Below, one piece after another: positions 8,024-63,015 of a stretch of DNA of 64,000 nt (the stretch's first letter is position 1; each line of letters begins with the position of its first letter). The notes under the pieces were generated by a model that was not told the origin of the DNA, did not search any database, and saw only the letters and a program-made list of their open reading frames with translations. The position numbers and the translations under genes are program-made. The stretch is taken from the sequence record PP712906.1. The stretch is one strand, 5' to 3'.

Positions 8024-8031
8024 TATAAATA
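8024..8031 (+). promoter_or_regulatory. T4-type late promoter
   Basis: Exact TATAAATA, 25 nt upstream of the ATG at 8057. Confidence 0.8.
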
Positions 8032-11965: not shown

Positions 11966-12484
11966 ATGAAAATTATATTCTTGGATATTGACGGCGTTCT
12001 AAACAATGCTTTAGAAGCCGATGAGCACAAGGACGTGCTACTTAATGGTGAGTATCAGGGGATTTATTCTCCTCGATGCGTAGACCGCTTAAACGATCTC
12101 GTTGAAATGACTGACGCACGCATTGTCCTTACCAGTGTGTGGCGTTGTGGTCTGTCAATTGATGAGATCAACACAGTGCTTCGAGCCATGGGAGTCAACG
12201 CTGAATGCATTGGTAAAACCGATATGCTCGATCACAAATACTCATGGGCGTTTCGTGGCAATGAGATTCTTAAATGGATTCATGACAACGAAGAGCTTAT
12301 TGGTAAACGTAGATACGAGTATCGAAGCTATGTCATCTTAGATGATGACACTGATATGCTGTTATGGCAACGTCATAACTATGTAAACTGCGACCCTGAG
12401 ATTGGCATGACTGATCGCGTGGTCGCAAAAGCTGCTGCAATACTGAATAACGCACCTTGTACCGATACTGGTCAAGAGTTTTAA
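11966..12484 (+). CDS. HAD phosphatase, Swiss-army-knife RNA repair type (HAD_SAK_2-like)
   Basis: KIIFLDIDGVLN, IVLTSVWR, RGNEILKWI and YVILDDD. Confidence 0.82.
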   Translation: MKIIFLDIDGVLNNALEADEHKDVLLNGEYQGIYSPRCVDRLNDLVEMTDARIVLTSVWRCGLSIDEINTVLRAMGVNAECIGKTDMLDHKYSWAFRGNEILKWIHDNEELIGKRRYEYRSYVILDDDTDMLLWQRHNYVNCDPEIGMTDRVVAKAAAILNNAPCTDTGQEF

Positions 12485-12490
12485 AAGTAG

Positions 12491-12518
12491 TTGACACGCA
12501 CAATAAAAGATGTAATAA
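12491..12518 (+). promoter_or_regulatory. early promoter of natV
   Basis: AAAAGTAGTTGACA followed by a TAATAAT region, as in the other early promoters. Confidence 0.6.
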
Positions 12519-12557
12519 TCTAATCTCAATCAACAATGACAAAATGGGGAGCCCAAC

Positions 12558-13583
12558 ATGTCACACGCAATCTTTATCGGACGTTTTCGTCCATTCCACA
12601 ACGGTCATCTATCTGCAATCACTCAAGCATTCGACGCTCTTGACCTAGACAAGATGACTATCTTAATCGGTAGCTCTAACCGACATCGTTCAGTTAAAAA
12701 CCCATTCGTGTTCGAAGAAGTACGCGATATGATGGGTGTTGCATTGCCTGATCACATTCGAAGCAAAGTTCGCTTTGTTCCGCTTGGTGATTACGCGAAA
12801 GACGACGTTTGGCAGTCAAATGTTCGTTCTCGTGCAAGAGGCGCAACTCACATCGTTGGTTACGACAAAGACGAAAGCAGCTACTACCTCAAGCTATTCC
12901 CTGAGCTAAAGCTATTTCAACCTGAACCAGTGAAGATGTATAACAAAGTTATCTCTGCAACTGACTTCAGAGAACTGTACTTCAGCGAGATTCTACTGAA
13001 TCACCCTGTAATGTCTGGTCTTATCCCTAAAGAAACGATGATGTTTCTTGATAACTGGAGCAAAACAGAGTTTTTCACTGAAATGAAAGCTGAATACGAT
13101 AGCTCAGTGCGCGAAATCGAGAAGTTTAAAGACTATCCTTACCAAGGTCACTTGAATATCGCGTGTGCTGATAACGTTGTTACGTGTGCAGGTCATGTTC
13201 TTCTTGTTGAGCGTAAGTTCAACCCAGGCAAAGGCTGTTTAGCATTACCTGGCGGGCATAAGCATGAGAAAGAAACATTCTTAGATGCTGCGATTCGTGA
13301 ACTGCAAGAAGAAACTAATATCAAAGTACCTGAAAAAGTACTGCGTGGCTCGCTTGTGGGTGAAAAGATGTTCGATAATCCAAATCGCTCTTACCCTCAC
13401 ACTCGCATCACAATGGCATATCACTTGAAAGTGCAGCCAAACCCAGACAACACTTTCCCGAAAGTGAAACCTGCTGATGATGCTGTATCAGCGAAATGGT
13501 ATCCACTGAGTGAAGTGCGCGACATGCAAGAACGTTTGTATGACGATCACTACCAAATCATTCAGTATTTCACTGGCATCTAA
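12558..13583 (+). CDS. natV: bifunctional NMN adenylyltransferase / ADP-ribose Nudix hydrolase (NadM-Nudix)
   Basis: IGRFRPFHNGH and SATDFRE; Nudix box LPGGH..E....DAAIRELQEET; ADDA..AKW and DDHYQII. Confidence 0.93.
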   Translation: MSHAIFIGRFRPFHNGHLSAITQAFDALDLDKMTILIGSSNRHRSVKNPFVFEEVRDMMGVALPDHIRSKVRFVPLGDYAKDDVWQSNVRSRARGATHIVGYDKDESSYYLKLFPELKLFQPEPVKMYNKVISATDFRELYFSEILLNHPVMSGLIPKETMMFLDNWSKTEFFTEMKAEYDSSVREIEKFKDYPYQGHLNIACADNVVTCAGHVLLVERKFNPGKGCLALPGGHKHEKETFLDAAIRELQEETNIKVPEKVLRGSLVGEKMFDNPNRSYPHTRITMAYHLKVQPNPDNTFPKVKPADDAVSAKWYPLSEVRDMQERLYDDHYQIIQYFTGI

Positions 13584-48880: not shown

Positions 48881-48911
48881 ATGCGGGTTGTTACGACATC
48901 CCGCATAAATA
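48881..48911 (+). promoter_or_regulatory. hairpin abutting a late-promoter-like CATAAATA
   Basis: ATGCGGG-T-TGT-TACG-ACA-T-CCCGCAT; CATAAATA at 48904-48911 is one mismatch from TATAAATA. Confidence 0.55.
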
Positions 48912-48943: not shown

Positions 48944-49474
48944 ATGCCAACTCCTACAACAGGTGCGATTTCAATCGGTACCGTTCGTGATTATTTCAGT
49001 AGAACCGGCGCTGCTTCATTGTCTCAGTACTACAGAGGCGGCGGTATTGTTCCTGATATTACTGAAAATGCTCACGTACCAACTTCAGGCGCGATTAGCT
49101 TGAATGACTTGCGCGGTGTATATCGCTTGTCAACGTATACGACATCATTTACGACAACATACAACACCACTGTATCAACATCGAATACGACTTCGCGTAG
49201 TACATCAAGAAGTACAACTAGAAGTACTGCATACAGTACAACTCGCTCGACTGCGTATACTACTAGTTGGACAACTAGCCGAACTACGTCGGTGACTAAA
49301 GGTTCGTATTCGACATCATACACGACTTCTCGTGCTACATCACGTTCAACATCATATAGCACGACACGTTCAACAGCTTATACGTCTACGTGGACAACAT
49401 CATGGACAACCACGTACAACACAACAGTATCAACATCAAACACAACTTCGCGAAGCACGCAAGTTGCAGTTTAA
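48944..49474 (+). CDS. Thr/Ser-rich fibre/adhesin-like protein with tetrapeptide repeats
   Basis: AAGGA RBS and ATG at 48944. N-domain with two GAIS motifs, then 13 + 13 [YWFRVN]-[STN]-T-[STA] repeats around VTKGS. Confidence 0.85.
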   Translation: MPTPTTGAISIGTVRDYFSRTGAASLSQYYRGGGIVPDITENAHVPTSGAISLNDLRGVYRLSTYTTSFTTTYNTTVSTSNTTSRSTSRSTTRSTAYSTTRSTAYTTSWTTSRTTSVTKGSYSTSYTTSRATSRSTSYSTTRSTAYTSTWTTSWTTTYNTTVSTSNTTSRSTQVAV

Positions 49475-49486
49475 CAGGGTTAAATT

Positions 49487-49705
49487 ATGAGCTACAATGA
49501 AGAACACGAGAACCGAATCAACGAGCTTGAGAACAAGGTTTCAAAGCTTGAGTCGATAATTGAAAATCTGGTCGAGTCAATGACTTCGAACAGCGAAGCT
49601 ATTATCGAACATATTGCATCACTTGAGACCGAGAGGGATTCGATTCTTGCATCATATGATGACAAACTTAATGAGATCGTGACCAAATATGAACCCAAGC
49701 AATAG
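49487..49705 (+). CDS. small coiled-coil protein
   Basis: Heptad pattern INELENKVSKLESIIENL. Confidence 0.75.
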   Translation: MSYNEEHENRINELENKVSKLESIIENLVESMTSNSEAIIEHIASLETERDSILASYDDKLNEIVTKYEPKQ

Positions 49706-50543
49706 AGAAATGACTGGGTTCAATAACATTTCTCGCACCGGTAAGTTGAAATTACAATCCGATGCAGACAACGTCCGTGCCATGTGTATGGACGTTGTTC
49801 GTTTATTGAACTCTAAAAATATACCATCTAACTTCGACATCAATCACAATGACGGTGGTAACATCGGCGTGCATGAATGGGTGTCACAAATCCGCTTCAT
49901 TCACTTGAAATACATGAACGTTAATTTCCAAACGAAGATTTTCAAGCATGCCTATCATAACACTGAAAACGTCGTTGACTATTTTGACACGTTCAAACAT
50001 TCTGACAAATATCATCTATCAGCGAAGCCTAGATTTTTAGAATATGAAAACGTCGTATTTCTATGTGGATCGAATGTACTTGAATTGGCAATTGACTTTG
50101 ACAAGATTGATACGCTGGTCGAACATTATCCCGATTTAGTGATCAAACCACACCCGATTACGACGCTGTATTACATCAATATGCTTAAAACTCGATATGG
50201 ATCGAAGCGCGTGCTTTCTCAGAAGATCAGCGGTGTTGATGTTCTTAAATCTGCTAAACGTGTTTGGCTACCTTCAACGTCTGAGTTCTGGTTTAGTGCC
50301 TTGAACTACGACAAAGAAATCGGGTTTATCTCTAAAGATGGTTTCTGTGGAACGTACACGTCAATCATCAACGCAGTATGGGAATTGCATGAAGAAACCG
50401 GTGATCCATTGAAAGATATTGTGAATAAAATTATCTCGTCACCTTACTCAGGTCTGTATGGTAGTATGGCAGACTTTGAAGAGCATCACGAGAAATACTG
50501 TAATGTGATTCTAGAACTAGGGGGTAATTTCGATAATGTATGA
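49689..50543 (+). CDS. KpsC/KpsS-like (GT-B) polysaccharide transferase
   Basis: LVIKPHP motif, then LKSAKRVWLPSTSEFWFSALNYDK, the typical layout of beta-Kdo/capsule-modification transferases. Confidence 0.6.
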   Translation: MNPSNREMTGFNNISRTGKLKLQSDADNVRAMCMDVVRLLNSKNIPSNFDINHNDGGNIGVHEWVSQIRFIHLKYMNVNFQTKIFKHAYHNTENVVDYFDTFKHSDKYHLSAKPRFLEYENVVFLCGSNVLELAIDFDKIDTLVEHYPDLVIKPHPITTLYYINMLKTRYGSKRVLSQKISGVDVLKSAKRVWLPSTSEFWFSALNYDKEIGFISKDGFCGTYTSIINAVWELHEETGDPLKDIVNKIISSPYSGLYGSMADFEEHHEKYCNVILELGGNFDNV

Positions 50544-51168
50544 TTATGTAATTCACACTTCGATTAGTGACAAAAGTCAGCTAAACCAACTAGTGATGTT
50601 TGTCGGGTCTTTCATCGAGACGCACAAAAAAGGTCGCGTGGTCTGCGTGACTGATCTTGAACTTGATTTCACGATGCCTCGACTGTCATTTGAGAAAAAA
50701 CTACCCGAAGAGTACGTTTTCATTTCAGTTGACAATCTATTTTTACAAAAAACATACGGCGTTGTTAGCTACATTGACAGTGGTACTTGGCGATGTACTT
50801 GGCAAAAGAATGATCATGATGATTTCGTCATTAAAAAGCATGGCGAAAGAAGCGGGTTGATTCACCCTGATATTGCAATTGCAAATTACAATGTTTCGAG
50901 ACATGGCGATCTCGACATGTATTACAACGCGCTTCGTTACATTGAGAGCGCAATCACGATCAACTGCAAAGACTTTGCCCCTGCTGCTGAGAATAAAATC
51001 AACAGCTTTTACACGCTTGTATTTCCATGGGAGATTTATTTTCACGTTATGATCACTTACCAAGAGTATATTGATTCTGAATACGTTGAGCGAGTTCGCG
51101 CTAACTGTCATAAGTTCGCACACTCGGTTTATTACAGAAAATCAGGGTTGTTACGTGATGGGTTATGA
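50536..51168 (+). CDS. divergent GT-A-like (nucleotide-sugar transferase) protein
   Basis: QLVMFVGSF..., VCVTD, FISVDNLFL resemble the GT8-type layout; weak. Confidence 0.35.
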   Translation: MYDYVIHTSISDKSQLNQLVMFVGSFIETHKKGRVVCVTDLELDFTMPRLSFEKKLPEEYVFISVDNLFLQKTYGVVSYIDSGTWRCTWQKNDHDDFVIKKHGERSGLIHPDIAIANYNVSRHGDLDMYYNALRYIESAITINCKDFAPAAENKINSFYTLVFPWEIYFHVMITYQEYIDSEYVERVRANCHKFAHSVYYRKSGLLRDGL

Positions 51169-51841
51169 TGAGATAATTTTAGTATCTGGTCTTGATAGTT
51201 TAGTTCTATATGAATTTCTTGAACGAAAGCCACACCCTGTTTACTTTAAATGGGGTTTTGCTATCGACGACATTGAAATGGCTGCTTTGCCTGAAGAAAC
51301 AACTATCATAGAAATGCCAGAGATTTTGCATTTGAAACATGATCCGTATGAGTTCAAGACACCAAGAAATCCCGATTTAATTGGTCGGAATACGTTGATG
51401 TTTAACTCAGTTTTCCATGCATTCAGACCAAACGTAATTTATCGCGGGATGTTGAAAGGTGATGATTTCTATTACGACGCATCGCCTACGCATTCAGATG
51501 AAATCGCAGCTATGTGGTCGAAAATGCTGAATAAAGAGTGTCGAATTGAACAACCGTTTAAAGACAAAACGAAACGTGACATAATGCAAATGGCGGTCGA
51601 ATACGGTATTGATGCGAATTCATTACAGCATTGTTACAATCGAGAACACAACTGCGGTCGATGTAGCAAGTGTGTGGATGCACATGTTAATTCTATGTAC
51701 ACCGACAACCCAGACATCATGTGGCTGAAACGAATAGTTAATGACTCGGGTATGGCATCATTGGCTAATCACATGTTTGGTGTTGATACAGTTGACAGAA
51801 TAAAGGAATTTCTAGATGAATTTGATCGAACAGACTGCTGA
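51158..51841 (+). CDS. QueC-like PP-loop ATP pyrophosphatase with Zn site
   Basis: ILVSGLDS, GRNTLM, YYDAS, PFKDKTK.DI and HCY...CGRCSKC. Confidence 0.8.
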   Translation: MGYDEIILVSGLDSLVLYEFLERKPHPVYFKWGFAIDDIEMAALPEETTIIEMPEILHLKHDPYEFKTPRNPDLIGRNTLMFNSVFHAFRPNVIYRGMLKGDDFYYDASPTHSDEIAAMWSKMLNKECRIEQPFKDKTKRDIMQMAVEYGIDANSLQHCYNREHNCGRCSKCVDAHVNSMYTDNPDIMWLKRIVNDSGMASLANHMFGVDTVDRIKEFLDEFDRTDC

Positions 51842-52709
51842 TAAATTCGAGCATAGTTACCGAGAAGACGTTCAAGGCGTACAGTGGTATTTCGGTAGTC
51901 GAACGCATGATTTTTATCTGTATGGAATAGACTCTCTTATTGATAAAGTCAAAGACTGTGATTTTATTGAAATCAAGCATGTTCAAGAGGGTACGCTGGT
52001 TAAACGAGGCGAAGCTGCGGTCACGGTTACGATTACAGATCATAGTCGTATCGCATATGGGAACATGATTGAAACATTGTTGTACAATGAGTTGTGGTAT
52101 TCGAGCACGGTCGGTACGATTTTACACCGTTGTCTTGATGTGTTGCATGAAAACGGCTATGACGCTCGTTCAGCATACCCTCAAATCGGACGGGCGAGTT
52201 CAACGCCAGAACAGTCAGCTAAAGCAAGGGATGTGTTCGCACGTATATTTTATCAATCGTCGAATGAGAAAATACCCGTTGCGATGCACAGTGATATTTT
52301 AATCAACGGTGAGGAATATTGCATGGAACATTATAACGGCATCATGATTGATACTTTCGATAAGCAAGCTTGCATTGACTTGATCAACAAGAAAGACTTT
52401 CGAGGGACTGTGATGGTTGACTCTCAGCCAATAATTGAAACAATTGAGAGAGTTCTAGCTGAAACAAAATGCTTTGTTGCACAAGCTGAAAGTGTTACAC
52501 TCGATGAGTGGATAGAGATAGTGCGACATTTTAAAGGCAATAAGCGAATTTTCTACGGGATTGGTAGCTTTGCATTTAGCAATATATCACGAGACACATT
52601 TGGTTTGATTTACAAAGTGTGTGCAGTTAAGAAAAACGACAACTGGATCGGAGTTTCAAAGATGACGACAGGTAAACAAACATCGGCTGGTTATAAGGTT
52701 ATAGGTTAG
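51816..52709 (+). CDS. divergent, shortened Nampt/NAPRT-family phosphoribosyltransferase
   Basis: Aligns by eye to nadV in this window: HVQEGT vs AVKEGT, IETLL..LWYSSTVGT vs LETFI..LWYPTTVAT, MHS vs EHS, IDTFD vs MDSYD, RDT..K vs RDT..K. Confidence 0.8.
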   Translation: MNLIEQTADKFEHSYREDVQGVQWYFGSRTHDFYLYGIDSLIDKVKDCDFIEIKHVQEGTLVKRGEAAVTVTITDHSRIAYGNMIETLLYNELWYSSTVGTILHRCLDVLHENGYDARSAYPQIGRASSTPEQSAKARDVFARIFYQSSNEKIPVAMHSDILINGEEYCMEHYNGIMIDTFDKQACIDLINKKDFRGTVMVDSQPIIETIERVLAETKCFVAQAESVTLDEWIEIVRHFKGNKRIFYGIGSFAFSNISRDTFGLIYKVCAVKKNDNWIGVSKMTTGKQTSAGYKVIG

Positions 52710-52711
52710 TT

Positions 52712-53701
52712 ATGAATTATTGTATAGCGCCGTTTACATCGCCGTCTATTACACCAGACGGTTTTAAAATTTGCAGCATGCCAGGTCAGAAAGTATACCC
52801 TGATATTTCATTCTGGAATAGTGATGAAGTGATCAAGATTCGCGAACAGATTATCGCTGGTGAAATTCCTGAATCGTGCAAGGCATGTCGTAGTATGCGT
52901 GACGGGTTGATTGTGTCAAAAGAAAAACCAACTGATACTCATGTTGACTTGAATTTCAAAGCTCTTTACATTGCGCGGTCGAACAAGTGTGAATATGCTT
53001 GTGAAATGTGCAGTTCATCAATCTCACATAGCTATGACAAGAAATACAATGACGGTAAGTTGGGGATTATTGAGAATGACTTTGATGTTATTCCGTATCT
53101 GCACGAAACACAAGCCGTTGCTATTTCGGGCGGGAACCCTGTCATTGACAAAAAGGTTGCAGAGATTCTTGAGAATCTAGACCCTGACGTGGTAGAACGT
53201 TTCATTATTACTTCAAATGGGACAGTCTTTCCAGACAGATTCTTGAATGCAATTAAGAGATTGAAATGTGACGCGACTTTGATATTCTCTATGGACGGAC
53301 CGAAAGAGTTTAATGAAGTGGTTCGATCTGGTGCGAAGCAAGAGAGAATCTATCGCACCATTAATCGAGTTCTTGACGAGATTGAAGATTACCCAAACTT
53401 GCATGTGGCAATTGAGTATACTTTCACGAATAAGTCAATTCATCACTACGTTGATTTGTATGATGAAATGCTCTTCGAGATCAACCCGAAGCATTTGAAA
53501 AACAACTCAGTTAAAGTGATTGCGAATATGTGTACATACCCGCATCACCTTAGCGTTACAACTGTTCCCAAAACCGTCATTGATGACATATTGTTCAATC
53601 AGTTGCCGTATTTGAGACAGCAACCCAGCCCATTGTCAAATCAATTCAAACTTGGCTATGATAAGTTTTTGACTCAGTATCACAACAGCGTGATTATGTG
53701 A
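52712..53701 (+). CDS. radical SAM enzyme with N-terminal SPASM/twitch-like domain
   Basis: C..PF...C...WNS..IRE..G..P.SCKAC; SNKCEYACEMC; SGGNP; TSNGT; SMDG. Confidence 0.9.
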   Translation: MNYCIAPFTSPSITPDGFKICSMPGQKVYPDISFWNSDEVIKIREQIIAGEIPESCKACRSMRDGLIVSKEKPTDTHVDLNFKALYIARSNKCEYACEMCSSSISHSYDKKYNDGKLGIIENDFDVIPYLHETQAVAISGGNPVIDKKVAEILENLDPDVVERFIITSNGTVFPDRFLNAIKRLKCDATLIFSMDGPKEFNEVVRSGAKQERIYRTINRVLDEIEDYPNLHVAIEYTFTNKSIHHYVDLYDEMLFEINPKHLKNNSVKVIANMCTYPHHLSVTTVPKTVIDDILFNQLPYLRQQPSPLSNQFKLGYDKFLTQYHNSVIM

Positions 53702-54818
53702 TCAGATCATACGCTTTGATATGTGAGTAAAACTCTGGACACGCAGACGATAAATTAGTTTTCGTCTTCGTGTCTATTCTTTTGTTAAGAACAAAGAATT
53801 CAGGGTTGAATTTACAAACACTGTGTTCCAGAGTAAGACATTCAGCAACGTGTTTAAATGGTCTAGCCAAATCCTCACGCCCATCTTTTAAATACGCTTC
53901 TTCTTTCACTTTGAATCTTGATAATAGCTGGTCTCGAAATGCAACTGGAATGTTGTAAATTGAGTATGGATTATCAGGCTCACCGACGACATGCACAGAC
54001 AAACGTACACGTTTACCATCATAAAGCGAATCAAAATCTGAAACCAATGTTTCAAGATGTTCAAGAGTCACGTTTGACACGGTCGCAGTGATAACTACAT
54101 CAAAGTGTTGCTTGATGACTTCAATGTTTGATTTGACTTTTTTGATGTCTGCAAACAATCGAATATAATCTTGGTATTCTCGTAGACCGTCGATTGATAC
54201 GAACACCGTTGATGCATTAGCTTCTTTAAGCGATTTGATGAGATCTGAGCCATCGGCTAACACTAGTGATGAGCCATTCGTGAAAATATTCACTGCGGCT
54301 TTAATGTCGCCTACGTTGCGAAGAACTTCAGGAGCATTTGACGAGCGGGTAATTTCACCGCCTAGAATTGTCAATGACGAAAGTCCTTTGCTGATTGTGT
54401 TGATTGTCGTACTCAAATCATTGAATCGAGTACTTGAATCTTCTTCATTGAACAATCTAGCCTTCAAGTCTGATAATTTGCTGTAGCAGTAACGACAAGC
54501 TTGATTACATTCATTACTAGGGAATACTTGTAGCCAGCGAACTGAATCAGCGGGCATAATAGGTGAAACTTCAGAATCGTGTTCTGTTAGACGCTGTGGG
54601 TCATTATCAGTAATGCACATTTGACATGCCTTTGACAGCTTGCTCATGTCGTGGTTTAGCATTGCTTCACGATAAGCGACAAGCTTTTCATCATTCCAAG
54701 CGTCTGCTAGTGTTTTTTCATCAGTAAACCATTCATAATCAGCCGAACAGCAAAACGTAATTTGATTGTTTGCTCGTGTGATGAACTGCTTGAACGGCAT
54801 ATAACATAGTGGTTTCAT
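53694..54818 (-). CDS. radical SAM enzyme with N-terminal SPASM/twitch-like domain
   Basis: C.MPF...FCC...AWND..REAM..CQMC; SNECNQACRYC; LGGEI; FTNGS; SIDG. Confidence 0.9.
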   Translation of the reverse strand: MKPLCYMPFKQFITRANNQITFCCSADYEWFTDEKTLADAWNDEKLVAYREAMLNHDMSKLSKACQMCITDNDPQRLTEHDSEVSPIMPADSVRWLQVFPSNECNQACRYCYSKLSDLKARLFNEEDSSTRFNDLSTTINTISKGLSSLTILGGEITRSSNAPEVLRNVGDIKAAVNIFTNGSSLVLADGSDLIKSLKEANASTVFVSIDGLREYQDYIRLFADIKKVKSNIEVIKQHFDVVITATVSNVTLEHLETLVSDFDSLYDGKRVRLSVHVVGEPDNPYSIYNIPVAFRDQLLSRFKVKEEAYLKDGREDLARPFKHVAECLTLEHSVCKFNPEFFVLNKRIDTKTKTNLSSACPEFYSHIKAYDLIT

Positions 54819-54828
54819 GTTTCTGTCC

Positions 54829-55401
54829 TTAGTTAAAAATGCTACTTGTATATATAGCAGTCTTCAGGGCATTGAAATGATCGTCAACTCTATTCACGTG
54901 TATGCATTCAATGTCAAATCTTTCTTGGATTTCTCGGATGTTGTCTAGTGAGTCGTCGATGAAGTATTTCACCTCATGCAGTTCACACAGCTTCTCGACA
55001 TACTTTGCCTTCGAGTCGAAGTACTCAATCGAAATCACCTCACTTATCATCCCTGGGAATAACGCATTTAGATTATACACGCGATTTGACCATGAAGTTC
55101 TACTCATGCTGAACTTGGTTAGTGCAATGATGTTATATCGGTCTGAGAGTTCGCGTAACGCATCGTAAGCGTCTTCATATGCGGGTATGTACTTTGCACA
55201 CTCATGTTCATTGTATGCGCCTATAAGCTTTCCTAGTTGCATGTCACTCACGTTAATAAATAAAGAGCGTGCATCGGTATCAGTATTTGAACCGTTGATA
55301 TTCAAATTATCAAGCATGCCTAATTGCATCATGAAGAATGGCAAGTTGGCTTTCCAGTTAAGCAAAACCCCGTCTACATCTATGATGATCGTCTTTTTCA
55401 T
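54829..55401 (-). CDS. HAD hydrolase, T4 gp30.2-like
   Basis: IIIDVDGVLLNW...LPFF; NR.YNLNALFPG; FIDD. Confidence 0.8.
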   Translation of the reverse strand: MKKTIIIDVDGVLLNWKANLPFFMMQLGMLDNLNINGSNTDTDARSLFINVSDMQLGKLIGAYNEHECAKYIPAYEDAYDALRELSDRYNIIALTKFSMSRTSWSNRVYNLNALFPGMISEVISIEYFDSKAKYVEKLCELHEVKYFIDDSLDNIREIQERFDIECIHVNRVDDHFNALKTAIYTSSIFN

Positions 55402-55442
55402 TACTACCTCGAAAAAAATTAAAATTTTTCGAAAAAAAGTAT

Positions 55443-55470
55443 TGACACTTAGTTTCGTTCATGTAATACT
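55443..55470 (+). promoter_or_regulatory. early promoter
   Basis: TTGACA followed by TAATACT, preceded by A-tracts (UP-like). Confidence 0.65.
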
Positions 55471-55534
55471 TATCTCAACTTAACGAAACAAGTTAAACAA
55501 ACAAGACAACATTTAATCAAAAAAGGAAATACAC

Positions 55535-55771
55535 ATGAAAAACTTCAAATCAATCGCAACTGCACTTCTTCTAACTATGACTTTCTCTGCTGGTGCTTTC
55601 GCACACGGCTCAGGCGGTACGCTAGGTGGTAACCTTGGCATCGAAATGTGCAAAATCGGAGCAATCAACTGCGGCTTCCCTAAACAAGAAGTTAAAGTTG
55701 AAAAAGAAGCACCAAAAGCTGAAAAGGCTGAGGTGAAAGAAGTTAAGCTGGCAACTGATCTGACAGCTTAA
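55535..55771 (+). CDS. small exported protein
   Basis: Signal peptide ending AFA; mature HGSGG...CKIGAINC; own promoter and terminator. Confidence 0.8.
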   Translation: MKNFKSIATALLLTMTFSAGAFAHGSGGTLGGNLGIEMCKIGAINCGFPKQEVKVEKEAPKAEKAEVKEVKLATDLTA

Positions 55772-55775
55772 TTGA

Positions 55776-55801
55776 AATGTGCAGATTCGTCTGCACATTT
55801 T
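55776..55801 (+). terminator. intrinsic terminator
   Basis: AAATGTGCAGA-TTCG-TCTGCACATTT-T. Confidence 0.9.
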
Positions 55802-55870
55802 GTTTAATAACGACTCACCAAGACATATACTAAAGTCTCACACAATCAAGCATAAAATGGGAGCCATACA

Positions 55871-57364
55871 ATGCTAAATCTTAATCAAAATATCGCAATC
55901 GCAACTGACAGCTACAAAGTTTCACACTGGTCTCAATTCCCTCGTGGTCTAGAGTACAGCCAATATTACGTCGAAAGCCGGGGTGGTAAGTTCGACAAAA
56001 TTATGGTCGATGGTATGGCATACATGTGTCGTATTCTCGAAAAAGGTGTTTCGATGAACGATGTCAAGCGTGCGAAACGTCTGTTCAAAAAGCACTTCGG
56101 TTCTGAAGTCTTCAATGACAAGGGTTGGGACATCATCGTTAACGAACTGAAAGGCAAACTGCCTATTAAGATTCGTGCGGTCAAAGAAGGTACTGTAGTA
56201 CCAGTTAAACACCCTATCTTGACGATTGAGAACACTGATCCACGTTTTGGTTGGCTGCCTGGCTATCTTGAAACGTTCATCTTGCGTGCTCTTTGGTACC
56301 CGACGACTGTAGCAACGATCTCGTTCGAAGTGAAGAAAATCATTCGCCAATTCATGAAGAAAACGGTTGATGATGAACGCATTGCAGAACAAGAGCCATT
56401 CAAACTTCACGACTTTGGTTCTCGTGGTGTATCAAGTGGCGAATCTGCGGCTATCGGCGGCTCTGCTCACTTGAAAAACTTCTTGGGTACTGACACTGTA
56501 GAAGCACTTGTTGCAGTTGAAGAACTTTACGCTGAAGATGTTGAAGACTTCATTGCAGGATTCTCAATCCCTGCACGTGAACACTCAACAACTACAATCT
56601 ACAAAGAAGCTGGTGAAGACCAAGCATTCTTGAACTCTATTGAGCAATGGGGTGCTGCATTATACGCTTGTGTAATGGACAGCTACGACTACGAAGCAGC
56701 AATGAATCGTGTCTCGACTGGTCGCTTCAAAGAGCTAATCATCAGCAAAGGCGGTACGTTTGTTGCTCGTCCTGACTCTGGTGTGCCTGTAGATGTAGTA
56801 ATGAAAGGTCTTGAGATTCTTGGTAAAAACGTTGGTTATACAATCAACAGCAAGGGTTACAAAGTATTGCACCCTAGCTACCGTATCATTCAAGGTGACG
56901 GCGTGAACATCGAAGAAATTCGTCGAATCTTGTCTTACATGGAAAGTAAAGGCTGGTCGGCAGAAAATATTGCATTCGGTATGGGTGGCGGGTTGCTTCA
57001 ACAACTTGACCGTGATACTCAACGCTTTGCAATGAAAATGTCAGCGGCAATCATCAACGGCGAATACGTTAGCGTGTTCAAAATGCCGAAGACTGATCCG
57101 ACAAAAGCATCAAAAGCAGGTTTCTTGGATTTGATTGCAGTTGATGCAGACAATCCGAACCCAGCGGCTCGTGGTTACGTGACGTTCTCTTCTGAAGATT
57201 ACGACAATCGCGTACACCCGAAAAGCGTGATGCAGACAATCTTCGAAGACGGTGTAACAGTTGCCGACTTCTCACTAGAAGAAGCGCGTAAACTGTCTGA
57301 CGTACAAGCTGACTTCCTGAACGAAGGTGAATGGAAAATCGCGAAAAAGATTCAAACTGCGTAA
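55871..57364 (+). CDS. nadV: nicotinamide phosphoribosyltransferase
   Basis: TDSYKVSH, LHDFGSRG, FLGTDT, PAREHS, DSYD, RPDSG, IIQGDG, FGMGGGLLQ and RDT..FAMK. Confidence 0.96.
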   Translation: MLNLNQNIAIATDSYKVSHWSQFPRGLEYSQYYVESRGGKFDKIMVDGMAYMCRILEKGVSMNDVKRAKRLFKKHFGSEVFNDKGWDIIVNELKGKLPIKIRAVKEGTVVPVKHPILTIENTDPRFGWLPGYLETFILRALWYPTTVATISFEVKKIIRQFMKKTVDDERIAEQEPFKLHDFGSRGVSSGESAAIGGSAHLKNFLGTDTVEALVAVEELYAEDVEDFIAGFSIPAREHSTTTIYKEAGEDQAFLNSIEQWGAALYACVMDSYDYEAAMNRVSTGRFKELIISKGGTFVARPDSGVPVDVVMKGLEILGKNVGYTINSKGYKVLHPSYRIIQGDGVNIEEIRRILSYMESKGWSAENIAFGMGGGLLQQLDRDTQRFAMKMSAAIINGEYVSVFKMPKTDPTKASKAGFLDLIAVDADNPNPAARGYVTFSSEDYDNRVHPKSVMQTIFEDGVTVADFSLEEARKLSDVQADFLNEGEWKIAKKIQTA

Positions 57365-57398
57365 AATGTGACATTGATCACTAAAAATCGTAAATTTA

Positions 57399-57471
57399 GG
57401 GTTGCTTCGGCAGCCCTTTTTTCGTATTATAGCTACATCGAAACGAGATACGAAAACAAAGAGAGAACATT
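57399..57471 (+). promoter_or_regulatory. terminator/early-promoter cassette
   Basis: GGGTTGC-TTCG-GCAGCCC-TTTTTT; TATTAT at 57425; ATCGAAACGAGATACG. Confidence 0.88.
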
Positions 57472-60692: not shown

Positions 60693-61745
60693 TCAATTTA
60701 CCATTTTGATTTGAATTTGATTGTCCATGTAAGCCATTTTCTTTTCAAATTCAACATCATATTCTGGTCGATGTTCGTATTCGACTGAAAGCATTTGCTT
60801 CAGACAACGGTACAATTCCGACTTGTAATACCCTTCTTTCATTCCCTTCATCTGTTCATATTGCTTTTTCATAGCAGCTTTGATTATCTTCGGGTCCATG
60901 AATTTGATTGACATTTCTCGCGGTGCTTTTACTGTGCCAAAGTCAACAAACACCTGAGCCTTTTCAGCTACTTGAATGAAGTCATAAATCGTGTCATAAC
61001 TCATTCGACTTAGCGTGTGGTGCATACAAACATGTTTGCTATGTTCTTTTAGCAACGGTACATTTGCAAGCATCAAGTCGTGGTCGATGTTCTGACGAAT
61101 GTATTCGTTGCGCTCTTTTCCGCCGTCACATGAAATTGTAAACACTAGACGATGTTTGTACTTTTTACATATGGCTAGAATCTTCTTCGCAAGTGGCGTA
61201 TGCAACACAGTACCATTTGTCAGAATGTAAACTTCCGCATTTGTTTCTTCCATGACTTCAGTCAGAACTTCGACTGTTCTCTTGTCCATGAACGGTTCGC
61301 CGCCGTATAGCACAACAGTTTCAACACCCTTCGGGATACTGAAATCGAGTTGTGTGTAATCGTAGTGGTCGTCAATGTCATACAAGTCCATGTATGTTTT
61401 GCTATTCTTGCCATAGCACATTCGACACGCTAGGTTACATTTGTTTGACATCAATATTTGAATTGTTCTAGGATGCTCTTCGAGTGCTTCATATTCGAAG
61501 TACTTCTGATCAGACAATTCGCCATAACTCATGCATTCTTTGCAGTATTCTGGTAAAGTGTCATACTCAAACATTTTGGCACGATGTTCATTGATTATGT
61601 CACTGTGCCACCAGTCTTCAACGTTCGGGAATGGTTCACTTAGCTGAGAACAGCAAATGTGATACCCATCCGGTTTTGCGTCACGTGTATTAAAGGGAGA
61701 GCCACAAAGTGGTCTCTTCCCGTCTTTAAATCCGAATTTATCCAT
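60693..61745 (-). CDS. radical SAM enzyme with N-terminal SPASM/twitch-like domain
   Basis: C.SPF...ICC...WWHS..RAKM...PEYCKEC; SNKCNLACRMC; YGGEPF; LTNGT; SCDG. Confidence 0.92.
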   Translation of the reverse strand: MDKFGFKDGKRPLCGSPFNTRDAKPDGYHICCSQLSEPFPNVEDWWHSDIINEHRAKMFEYDTLPEYCKECMSYGELSDQKYFEYEALEEHPRTIQILMSNKCNLACRMCYGKNSKTYMDLYDIDDHYDYTQLDFSIPKGVETVVLYGGEPFMDKRTVEVLTEVMEETNAEVYILTNGTVLHTPLAKKILAICKKYKHRLVFTISCDGGKERNEYIRQNIDHDLMLANVPLLKEHSKHVCMHHTLSRMSYDTIYDFIQVAEKAQVFVDFGTVKAPREMSIKFMDPKIIKAAMKKQYEQMKGMKEGYYKSELYRCLKQMLSVEYEHRPEYDVEFEKKMAYMDNQIQIKMVN

Positions 61746-62017
61746 TAATCTAGCTCATCAAGAAGTGATTGAAATTCTTCGTCGCGTTCAGCGTCGATTG
61801 TACCAGTCATCAACTCTGTTAGAGTCTTCAACGACTTGATCTCTGGTGGTTGAGGGCGTAGATCTTCGAGAATGTGAATGATTGACTCGACCGGGAGATC
61901 GTGATTTACAATCTCGTCTGGCAGGTGGTGTTTGTAAACGCAGTCGTCGCCCCAATCAATAACTACTGCATGTTCCCATTTGTCGATTTCTAGTATTTTA
62001 AAATTTGGTTTCATCAT
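61745..62017 (-). CDS. small acidic hypothetical protein
   Basis: ATGA/TAATG-coupled between the GT and the radical SAM gene. Confidence 0.75.
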   Translation of the reverse strand: MMKPNFKILEIDKWEHAVVIDWGDDCVYKHHLPDEIVNHDLPVESIIHILEDLRPQPPEIKSLKTLTELMTGTIDAERDEEFQSLLDELD

Positions 62018-63015
62018 AAGCCCCAGAGTTCTTTCCAATGTGTTTTAGCATCTTGTCGATACTTCTCAATGTCAAATTTTTGATATTTCTGTTCGATTGC
62101 ATCATCAATGACGCGGATCAACGTATCATTGTTTATATCAGCACGAATCACTGGGAAAATAAAATCCCTTGTGTAAGGTGCGTCATGCTGAACAATACAA
62201 GGTATGTACTGACATGCTTCTAATAACGCATATGGCATAATCTCGATTCTAGACATATGAAGCAAAACTTTACTTTTCATCATATGTGCTATGACTCGCT
62301 CACGCCGCTGACAAGTTTCGACTATACAATCAACACCATTCGGGATTCTTATTGGTTCGGTTGTGAATAGACGAATTTTAAGACCGCTGTATGCAAGCGC
62401 GTTTAGCATTTCGGGTATCTGCTTACGTTTGTATGCACCTGACACGATAATCACGTCAGACGCTTCAGCAGCGTCAATATCAGCTTGTGATATAGACGGA
62501 AGCTCAAATGGTTCAAATGCAGTCACATGTTTGCCACCAATTACTTCTCGACCCCATTGTGCAATCCCGTTCGATTGAGCAATGTTAGTGACTAATGACG
62601 TTGACATCATGTGTCGCCATTGAGGTAAGTTGTAAATTTGATGAATGTCCATGTATTCGCGATATGAATCTGGTACTATCAAGTCACCGAAATGATGTTG
62701 GTTGTAACAACGGCGCTTCGCTTCGATACATGCGCGGAGTGCTTCATATGAATGCGTGTAGATAATCGCTTCGCTATCAATCGCGTTGATAACCATTGCG
62801 TTTGCCTTGTAGTCTTTATAAGACCGTTTCGTTAAAATGAAGTCACACCCGAAATCCCATTTGCTCACGTGTGGACACGATTCGTCTCCGAGTACAATAA
62901 CTTTGACATCACAGTTTAGTGATTGCATTAAACGAACGTGATCTTGAATGAATGTGTAAATACCGCCGCCAATTCCCAACATAAAGTCAGTTACTACGTA
63001 GCGAACTTTTTTCAT
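62014..63015 (-). CDS. GT-B glycosyltransferase (GT4-like)
   Basis: N-terminal GGGIYTF; C-terminal S..EIMPYALLEA (Ex7E) motif. Confidence 0.8.
   Translation of the reverse strand: MKKVRYVVTDFMLGIGGGIYTFIQDHVRLMQSLNCDVKVIVLGDESCPHVSKWDFGCDFILTKRSYKDYKANAMVINAIDSEAIIYTHSYEALRACIEAKRRCYNQHHFGDLIVPDSYREYMDIHQIYNLPQWRHMMSTSLVTNIAQSNGIAQWGREVIGGKHVTAFEPFELPSISQADIDAAEASDVIIVSGAYKRKQIPEMLNALAYSGLKIRLFTTEPIRIPNGVDCIVETCQRRERVIAHMMKSKVLLHMSRIEIMPYALLEACQYIPCIVQHDAPYTRDFIFPVIRADINNDTLIRVIDDAIEQKYQKFDIEKYRQDAKTHWKELWGL

Follow-up and report, generated by a model that had tools for sequence, protein, structure and literature searches.

Introduction

The attachment of nucleobases to proteins by enzymes of the QueC family is a recent discovery, made so far only in bacterial defence systems (Cap9, QatC). 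In type IV of the antiphage signalling system based on cyclic oligonucleotides (CBASS), Cap9 and Cap10 are responsible for the N-terminal deazaguanylation of the CD-NTase. QatC, a QueC-family enzyme encoded beside QatB, is described as carrying out the ATP-dependent conjugation of 7-carboxy-7-deazaguanine (CDG) to the N-terminus of QatB. The Nampt family of phosphoribosyltransferases is so far known only for pyridine nucleotides and, as Namat, for NAD+. Here we describe two overlapping phage genes, one QueC-like and one Nampt-like, that lie in a stretch of 64,000 nucleotides of sequence record PP712906.1 (hereafter, the window). Positions 49600–57400 of the window are 100% identical, at the same coordinates, to the KVP40-like Vibrio phage TCU-VP03-AIR1 (PP712906.1), and 99.9% identical to positions 131943–139743 of phage KVP40. 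Genes are referred to by their KVP40 names (K254 for KVP40.0254, K258 for KVP40.0258, etc.), coordinates are those of the window, and related loci carry L-numbers. Taken together, the results point to the recurring QueC-like/Nampt-like pair being an undescribed base- or protein-modifying module, and not a route for NAD salvage or for the synthesis of queuosine precursors. Literature searches on the locus, and on the combination of QueC-like, Nampt-like, radical S-adenosylmethionine (SAM) and tail-fibre genes, returned no description of it in the library searched.

Results

The QueC-like protein K258

The open reading frame (ORF) of K258 extends from an ATG at 51158 to a TGA at 51841 and encodes 227 residues; the RefSeq start in KVP40 is a GTG located 3 nt earlier. 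The ORF of K259 extends from an ATG at 51816 to 52709 and encodes 297 residues. The two reading frames share 26 nt, and the K259 ATG is preceded by an AAGGA at a distance of 8 nt. An initial annotation, made by reading the sequence only, had described them as two overlapping frames for a QueC-like protein and a Nampt paralogue, and this was confirmed by Pfam, PHROG and AlphaFold2/Foldseek comparisons. Judged by their motifs, neither K258 nor K259 is a plain QueC or a plain Nampt.

K258 matched Pfam QueC (3.4e-9) and PHROG 1550 (1.6e-51). Its AlphaFold2 model (predicted local distance difference test score, pLDDT, 92) gave Cap9 and QueC as the top Foldseek matches and showed an additional C-terminal tail, helical and about 50 residues long. 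The nearest structure in the PDB was Cap9 (9nto_B), both by sequence (2.6e-5, compared to 0.058 for QueC) and by fold (2.9e-8). With TIGR00364, the equivalog model for QueC, K258 scored 28.7 bits against a cut-off of 150.3, and it was about 21% identical, over 136 residues, to the phage's own QueC (KVP40.0124).

The motif residues of K258 are S10-G11-L12-D13-S14, R77-N78 and C159/C166/C169/C172. Its PP-loop reads xSGxDS (e.g., VSGLDS) instead of SGGxDS. In place of the first Ser there is V, I, M or T, and the Ser has shifted by one position to where the first Gly would be. This variant marks a clade of 15 sequences, comprising K258 and its 14 nearest members. The motifs YxQxHxxE, VPxRN and YPDC have been defined for QueC (PMC13082051). 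In K258, the first of these is replaced by WGFxI, only the Glu (E40) being retained. The Arg of the second is retained as R77, while its Asn varies, being Asp or Thr in relatives. Of the third, Y105 and the acidic residue at 107 are kept and the Pro and Cys are gone. The PFxxxxK motif is retained. The four invariant Cys, which on sequence grounds form a putative zinc site, have the spacing C-x6-C as against the canonical C-x8-C. Thus, of the features that had been listed initially, SGLDS, RN and the four Cys are all present; SGLDS, however, is a shifted variant and not the normal loop, and relatives do not share the Asn of RN. Residues S10, G11, D13, S14, R77, Y105, K139 and the four Cys were invariant across homologues that are 38–78% identical. 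By its equivalog score, its PP-loop and its motifs, K258 is not a canonical QueC.

The published contacts of Cap9 to its conjugated deazaguanine, L83, R86, Y115 and D117, align with K258 residues L74, R77, Y105 and D107. Within the K258 family, L74, R77 and Y105 do not vary, and position 107 is Asp or Glu in most members. These residues argue for a predicted substrate of the QueC type, i.e., a heterocyclic acid, rather than for any one acid in particular. In the phylogenetic tree, which the initial annotation had proposed as a comparison with QueC and Cap9, K258 grouped with QueC proteins of the phage type, in a clade of 24 sequences (SH-aLRT 97). Sequences scoring high on the PADLOC model for CBASS-type QueC fell outside this clade. 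The resemblance to Cap9 is therefore at most a functional analogy and not family membership.

The Nampt-like protein K259

K259 matched Pfam NAPRTase (1.6e-6) and PHROG 448 (4.3e-37). Its AlphaFold2 model (pLDDT 90) matched human NAMPT in Foldseek with an E value of 1e-16 and a template-modelling score for the query (TMq) of 0.79–0.83; compared with Namat, the TMq was 0.70. The alignment spans the full length of K259 and residues 12–430 of NAMPT. The score in NF006629, a Nampt-type model, was 63.5 bits against a cut-off of 405. K259 has 297 residues compared to 497 for NadV, the canonical Nampt of the phage. The shortening is through internal deletions, and Pfam finds no NAMPT_N domain.

NAMPT residues (His247, R196, F193, D219, R311, etc.) carry the numbers of the human protein. 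K259 keeps His158 (in AMHS), D179-T-F-D182, D202-S203, R259-D-T..K267, K282, K287 and R126, and with them the equivalents of NAMPT H247, R196, D313, R392, K400, K415 and K423. His158 is invariant across homologues, as are R126, D202, R259 and the three Lys. K259 lacks the equivalents of F193, D219 and R311. In most members of its family the F193 position is Gln or Lys, no conserved Asp is found at the D219 position, and the position of the N-terminal stacking aromatic residue (Tyr18') is Phe, Tyr, Met or absent. RPDSG reads VDSQP, without the Arg, and DSYK is changed to DKFE. GDG reads AES, in which an acidic residue is retained, and GGG reads GSF. As judged from the alignment, K259 keeps the predicted phospho-His and most of the phosphoribosyl contacts, and the nicotinamide pocket is gone.

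Most of what had been noted for this protein was upheld by the alignment, namely that the phospho-His (MHS), DTFD, DS and RDT..K are kept, that DSYK has become DKFE, and that the Arg of RPDSG is lost. The FLGTD segment, whose Asp sets nicotinamide specificity, had been described as missing. The specificity Asp is indeed lost, but the segment as a whole is not: MAFFT aligns FLGTD with FYQSS of K259, and a 21-residue deletion follows directly after.

Compared with phage QD01, the proportions of nonsynonymous and synonymous differences (pN/pS) were 0.134/0.809 for K258 and 0.140/0.708 for K259. With pS of 0.7–0.8, i.e., saturated, and pN of 0.13–0.14, both genes are under purifying selection.

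Recurrence of the pair

The pair of QueC-like and Nampt-like genes was seen again in four further phage lineages, usually accompanied by a radical SAM gene. The examples outside Vibrio are metagenomic or draft contigs. In a SU10-like podophage (L013), the two proteins are each 35% identical to their KVP40 counterparts (E 1.5e-59 for the Nampt-like protein), the genes lie head-to-tail with an overlap of 4 nt, and the pair comes directly after a gene for a 670-residue protein with tail-fibre repeats. In a second SU10-like contig (L027), the QueC-like gene is followed, again with a 4-nt overlap, by a gene for a Nampt-like protein of 397 residues (hidden Markov model, HMM, 1e-58). A Chromobacterium-associated phage or prophage (L015/L019) has, in this order, two S74 tail fibres, a Gly-rich protein, the QueC-like protein, a radical SAM protein (251 residues) and the Nampt-like protein (404 residues), the block lying just before the lysis genes. 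In L024, S74 fibres precede a Gly-rich, GP38-like protein; then come two QueC-like genes, a very distant Nampt-like gene, another fibre, a radical SAM gene and two clear Nampt-like genes.

It may be noted that L013 also carries a truncated QueC-like paralogue (12130–12585; 151 residues) that has an SGLSS loop and no zinc site. Its gene overlaps the end of a GP38-like Gly-rich gene by 4 nt, and the full pair is 4 kb upstream.

The family is rare. Canonical queC was present in 45 phage records and the K258/K259 pair in only 35; a tblastn search of cultured phages with P0012 returned the same 35 vibriophages only. A profile of the QueC-like family, searched against 1.84 billion representative proteins, gave five matches below 1e-30, one of which is the fusion protein P0011 described below. 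Homologue searches with single proteins and with family profiles returned the family itself and weak matches only, and scans of viral_contigs returned KVP40 only. Profile scans of metagenome_contigs and genome_contigs gave no match, nor did P0035, a distant QueC-like protein, when cultured phages were searched with it by tblastn.

The motif protein K254 and its putative link to adhesin-like proteins

In L013, L015/L019, L024 and L025, a gene upstream of a QueC-like gene overlaps it by 4 nt. This upstream gene encodes a low-complexity protein with the N-terminal double motif P-x-SG-x-IS...F/L-x-G. The Pfam model for the GP38 adhesin matched the motif protein of L013 above the cut-off and that of L024 below it. 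An HMM for the motif was trained only on proteins from phage lineages other than the KVP40 type. This HMM ranked the K254 ORF first among the 668 ORFs of the window (E 0.0046; runner-up, 0.79). When 2264 ORFs from 16 loci were searched, K254 was again matched (E 0.0073), as were its six positional orthologues; these proteins, from seven T4-like loci in all, were the sole non-training matches with E below 0.15, and the control loci gave no match. The ORF of K254 was listed as starting at 48881, and its homologues start at the MP.. codon at 48944.

The motif domain was also found in proteins encoded directly after tail-fibre genes in phages without the enzymes. In phage VH7D, two genes, for a motif protein and a PagP-like protein, lie between the orthologue of K0253 and NadV, and the K258/K259 pair is absent. 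The VH7D motif protein (177 residues; HMM 5e-6) has a non-repetitive tail. On comparing the KVP40 and VH7D loci, the cassette enzymes go with a motif protein of the S/T-rich form. The presence at the same locus of a motif protein with a different tail, and of no enzymes, delimits K254–K262 as a cassette of about 6.5 kb. At this locus (L030, 10846–11962), the VH7D motif protein has three SGxIS copies, and the PagP-like outer-membrane protein has a signal peptide.

Layout of the cassette

K258 and K259 form the putative enzymatic core of this accessory cassette, which spans K254–K262 (48944–55401). Its genes, and the flanking NadV gene, are as follows.

48944..49474, plus strand: KVP40.0254, protein with the SGxIS motif and a tail of S/T/R/W/Y-rich repeats; it opens the cassette and is the candidate for the protein substrate or partner.
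49487..49705, plus strand: KVP40.0255, helical protein of 72 residues; orthologues at the same position in L008 and L010; no family match.
49689..50543, plus strand: KVP40.0256, 284 residues, weakly like glycosyltransferase (GT) family 52 (Pfam GT52 6.4e-4, below the cut-off); PHROG 30602; in the T4-like cassette version only.
50536..51168, plus strand: KVP40.0257, 210 residues, overlapping both neighbours; PHROG 30897 only; orthologues in all T4-like versions.
51158..51841, plus strand: KVP40.0258, PP-loop ATP pyrophosphatase of the QueC family, with the shifted PP-loop and a putative C-x6-C-x2-C-x2-C zinc site.
51816..52709, plus strand: KVP40.0259, minimised homologue of Nampt-family phosphoribosyltransferases, 297 residues, aligned over its full length to NAMPT 12–430.
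52712..53701, plus strand: KVP40.0260, radical SAM protein of the N-terminal twitch type, CEYACEMC (Pfam Radical_SAM 2.9e-9; NF033640 3.4e-34).
53694..54818, minus strand: KVP40.0261, second twitch-type radical SAM protein, a paralogue of KVP40.0260 (Pfam, PHROG, NCBIfam).
54829..55401, minus strand: KVP40.0262, HAD-like protein related to T4 gene 30.2 (PHROG 420 9.7e-39; weak Pfam HAD); last conserved gene of the cassette.
55871..57364, plus strand: NadV, canonical Nampt, flanking the cassette and outside it (Pfam NAPRTase 1.3e-47, and NAMPT_N).

Five of the genes form a forward run (49689–53701) with overlaps of 8, 11 and 26 nt and one gap of 2 nt. Orthologues of K262 close the cassette in L008, L010 and D479. 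K257 had no match in Pfam, NCBIfam or the PDB sequences, and K256 had no usable match among the PDB sequences. HxDGG and KPHP stretches were invariant across orthologues of K256 that are 35–71% identical; they resemble the D/E-D/E-G and HP motifs of bacterial sialyltransferases.

The T4-type late promoter TATAAATA was not found near the cassette. It occurred once in the 64-kb window (at 8024), compared with 2.1 occurrences expected by chance; with this single consensus, the whole stretch looks like one of early or middle genes. Scans for sigma-70 promoters and terminators gave background levels only.

Radical SAM enzymes and other accessory genes

The nearest PDB match of K260 was the radical SAM domain of ChlB, and those of K261 were GDGT-MAS and SkfB. 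Both proteins most resemble the SPASM/twitch maturases that modify peptides. An ORF in L010 (10001–11677) encodes a protein of 558 residues (P0011) in which a QueC-like domain is fused to an orthologue of the K260-type radical SAM protein, a "Rosetta-stone" fusion. The same fusion was present in L011 and L012, i.e., in three independent assemblies, and in these contigs the Nampt-like gene lies two genes downstream of the fusion ORF. The radical SAM protein of L015 was considered as a QueE and rejected, being only weakly RlmN/Cfr-like.

K260 also has a weak NCBIfam match to a cyclophane-forming maturase (YhhB). The tail of K254 (49100–49474) is S/T/R-rich, with Trp or Tyr at roughly regular intervals (TSW, AYS, AYT). 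Cross-linking of this tail by a radical SAM enzyme is conceivable.

Other versions of the cassette hold extra genes (L008, 10686–11363 and 14400–16660; L010, 11800–12432 and 13313–15642; L002, 9208–10383). One of these, between the QueC-like and Nampt-like genes, encodes a protein like 2-oxoglutarate (2OG)-Fe(II) oxygenases; others encode a protein of 312–318 residues and a nucleotidyltransferase/kinase-like protein of 441–458 residues. Downstream of the fusion, L010 has NADAR and acyl-carrier (PP-binding) genes, and the QD01 version of the cassette adds a heptosyltransferase-like gene.

A third radical SAM paralogue with an N-terminal twitch (NF033640 6.5e-39) was found among three minus-strand genes of the window (60693–61745, 61745–62038 and 62014–63015). 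Beside it is a gene that in KVP40 carries the Pfam annotation glycosyltransferase group 1. By comparison of annotations, VH7D has only two short genes at this site. The region may be a second accessory cassette.

Deazaguanine and NAD genes of the phage

A homologue search found no folE, queD or dpdA in the 64-kb window, as had been reported from the initial reading, and no queF. In the same genome, a canonical queC, a queF and a dpdA2-like gene were located at 235893–238979 of PP712906.1. A check for a separate canonical queC had been suggested at the outset; its presence rules out K258 as the sole canonical preQ0 synthase of the phage. KVP40 carries a full deazaguanine set, for DNA modification.

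The NadV of VH7D, a phage without the K258/K259 cassette, is 97% identical to that of the KVP40 type. Between the KVP40 type and QD01, NadV is 96% identical with a pS of 0.31, whereas the cassette proteins are 69–83% identical and their synonymous sites are saturated. The far greater divergence of the cassette, compared to its NadV neighbour, suggests faster evolution or exchange.

Discussion

A proposed phage module analogous to Cap9 and QatC

We tentatively favour a reading in which the locus encodes a nucleobase-activating and phosphoribosylating phage module that would act on the adjacent adhesin-like protein, by analogy with deazaguanylation by Cap9 and QatC. This preference draws on the non-canonical nature of both proteins, on the conservation of the pair across distant phages, on its link to the motif protein, on the QueC-like/radical SAM fusion, on Cap9 being the nearest structure to K258, on the conserved base contacts, and on the resemblance of K260 and K261 to maturases. 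The QueC-like enzyme would adenylate, at the expense of ATP, the carboxylate group on a planar heterocyclic acid, most likely a 7-deazaguanine-type base such as CDG, which phage and host alike would make. Like Cap9 and QatC, it would then transfer the activated acid to an amine; as the acceptor, we favour the neighbouring motif protein. The Nampt-like enzyme, with its rebuilt base pocket, would use phosphoribosyl pyrophosphate (PRPP) to form an N-glycosidic bond on the base, either free or already conjugated. Such a base–ribose bond would parallel the reaction of the TGT-like Cap10, the partner of Cap9. The radical SAM enzymes, joined in the T4-like version by the GT-like, 2OG-oxygenase-like and HAD-like proteins, may further tailor the base or the protein.

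The initial annotation had proposed a two-step unit and offered three options for its role. K258 and K259 do behave as a unit, recurring in other lineages, but the unit is not limited to two genes, since a radical SAM gene and a motif-protein gene are usually linked to it. Among the three options, a nucleobase–protein conjugate appears to fit the gene neighbourhoods best.

Several points weigh against the module as we picture it. The identities of the acid, the acceptor and the substrate of the phosphoribosyltransferase are all inferred, from comparative genomics only. The base-contact residues of K258 are general features of the QueC family and do not tell CDG from a similar heterocycle, and the binding of ATP by the shifted PP-loop is a prediction. 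L025 has a QueC-like gene and no Nampt-like gene nearby, and in L027 no motif protein was found adjoining the pair. Adjacency at the ends of tail modules can reflect a common site for accessory genes. The homology of the K254 motif is short, with single E values of 7e-4 to 0.14 and an hhalign probability of 38%; these values being marginal, the link to K254 rests on the pattern of HMM ranking. In contrast to the substrates of Cap9 and QatC, the motif proteins do not all have Gly at the N-terminus. Finally, in view of the absence of a T4-type late promoter from the region, K254 may not be a virion protein.

A more specific form of the favoured reading is, in our view, improbable. Here, the adhesin-like protein would be decorated with a nucleobase that the Nampt-like enzyme then converts to a protein-linked nucleotide or nucleoside, amounting to viral deazaguanylation. 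If so, the decorated adhesin could serve as a Trojan-horse ligand for nucleoside channels; OmpK, the receptor of KVP40, is a member of the Tsx family of nucleoside channels.

Alternative explanations

The alternative that survives best, though we consider it doubtful, is a pathway for a free small molecule. The radical SAM, QueC-like and Nampt-like enzymes would together make a soluble nucleotide or nucleoside of a new kind, by phosphoribosylating a heterocyclic acid and either amidating its carboxylate or converting it to a nitrile, for DNA or RNA modification, signalling or use as a cofactor; the adjacency to adhesin genes would then be positional only. Small molecules are the normal substrates of all three enzyme families, the wider clade of K258 includes a phage QueC (P0014) within a FolE/QueD/QueE cluster, and a HAD-like phosphatase closes the cassette. 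Moreover, PRPP-dependent ribosylation of CDG or preQ0 is known in the biosynthesis of tubercidin and toyocamycin. Such a pathway does not account for the 4-nt overlap of the motif-protein gene with a QueC-like gene in four lineages, or for the co-variation of the enzymes with the type of motif-protein tail at the KVP40/VH7D locus. Also, no inserting enzyme of the dpdA/tgt type is linked to the cassette, and the phage already has its full set for deazaguanine DNA modification.

K258 and K259 might instead be pseudo-enzymes, i.e., non-catalytic chaperones, assembly factors or structural partners of the adhesin-like proteins. The departure of the PP-loop from SGGxDS, the loss of R311 and the GDG motif from K259, and the truncated QueC-like protein of L013, with its SGLSS loop, lack of a zinc site and position right after a gp38-like gene, would all suit such a role. 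The invariance of the catalytic-type residues of both proteins across homologues, and the strong purifying selection on both genes, make it unlikely.

Deamidated NAD salvage was the first option of the initial annotation and fitted worst. In this scheme K259 would convert nicotinate and PRPP to nicotinic acid mononucleotide (NaMN), and K258 would amidate NaMN to nicotinamide mononucleotide (NMN), feeding NatV and complementing NadV. NadE and LarE, both of them PP-loop enzymes, act on the carboxylates of nicotinate nucleotides, LarE falls in the PF06508 superfamily, and in the KVP40 group NadV is located 3 kb downstream. Against this, every pyridine-ring-binding residue is lost from K259, and K258 keeps base contacts of the QueC/Cap9 type. 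The pair sits in tail-gene blocks, the fetched stretches show no canonical full-length Nampt or NMNAT, and outside the KVP40 group no NMNAT or other NAD gene is linked to it. Phages of the VH7D type have NadV but no cassette, and the published phage pathways, NARP1–NARP3, use other proteins. NARP3 was considered as a match and rejected, as it is an unrelated PnuC/NadR system. We regard salvage as very unlikely.

The chances of a counter-defence decoy are slimmer still. The module would interfere with type IV CBASS or QatABCD, e.g., by consuming CDG or by mis-modifying a defence protein, in keeping with CBASS-type QueC being the best match in both the PDB and PADLOC, and with the accessory nature of a cassette that diverges faster than the neighbouring core genes. 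The tree, however, puts K258 with phage-type QueC and apart from the Cap9-like sequences of PADLOC, and a decoy would leave the adhesin-like protein, the radical SAM enzymes and the Nampt-like partner unexplained.

Ordinary redundancy, with K258 a second preQ0 synthase and K259 a plain shortened Nampt, is hardly credible in spite of the names carried in database annotations, as both scores are far under the cut-offs (for QueC, 28.7 with a cut-off of 150; for the Nampt type, 63.5 with one of 405), the family-defining motifs are lost, and the same genome has both a canonical QueC and NadV.

Implications

If the favoured reading holds, the Cap9/QatC-like module would be the first phage-side example of nucleobase attachment by a QueC-family enzyme and the first pairing of such an enzyme with a remodelled Nampt. 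It would represent a new modification of tail-fibre-type proteins and a new class of substrates for type II phosphoribosyltransferases. Should a free metabolite be formed instead, the pathway would still be an undescribed one. The system is tractable, KVP40 being a cultured model phage and VH7D a natural comparator without the cassette.

Comparison with known systems

The cassette resembles SPASM/twitch clusters for ribosomally synthesised and post-translationally modified peptides (RiPPs) in having a protein whose N-terminal motif is conserved and whose low-complexity body varies, with relatives of radical SAM maturases alongside. Unlike in RiPP clusters, the candidate substrate has 170–370 residues and is associated with tail fibres in other phages; we know of no RiPP pathway that uses a QueC-like or a Nampt-like enzyme.

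K259 shares with Nampt/NadV and with Namat (of NARP1) the fold, the phospho-His and most of the phosphate- and ribose-binding residues. It differs from Nampt/NadV in its length (297 compared to about 490 residues) and in that R311 and the residues of the pyridine pocket (Y18, F193 and D219) have no conserved equivalents. No Prs-like gene, such as encodes Adps, the partner of Namat, was found in the cassette or the related loci, and no NMNAT partner was found within the unit.

Like canonical QueC, K258 belongs to PF06508 and has the Arg of VPxRN, both the Tyr and the acidic residue from YPDC, a PFxxxxK motif and four Cys that form a putative zinc site. It differs in having WGF for YxQxH, in xSGxDS and C-x6-C, and in its lack of linkage to queD or queE. 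QatC, with about 400 residues, a motif set of its own and a C-x19-C variant of the zinc site, is unlike K258, which has 227 residues; PADLOC gave no QatC match for K258, and no QatA, QatB or QatD genes were found nearby.

Cap9 is the nearest solved structure. K258 differs from it in being phage-encoded outside any defence operon, in having a Nampt-like partner, and in its shifted PP-loop and extra C-terminal tail; genes for a CD-NTase, a TGT-like protein (Cap10) or an OGG-like protein were not found in the window or the related loci. Like Cap9, K258 has the QueC fold, a putative zinc site and matching base-contact positions; it also has a candidate protein substrate encoded beside it and a partner homologous to an enzyme that forms base–ribose bonds.

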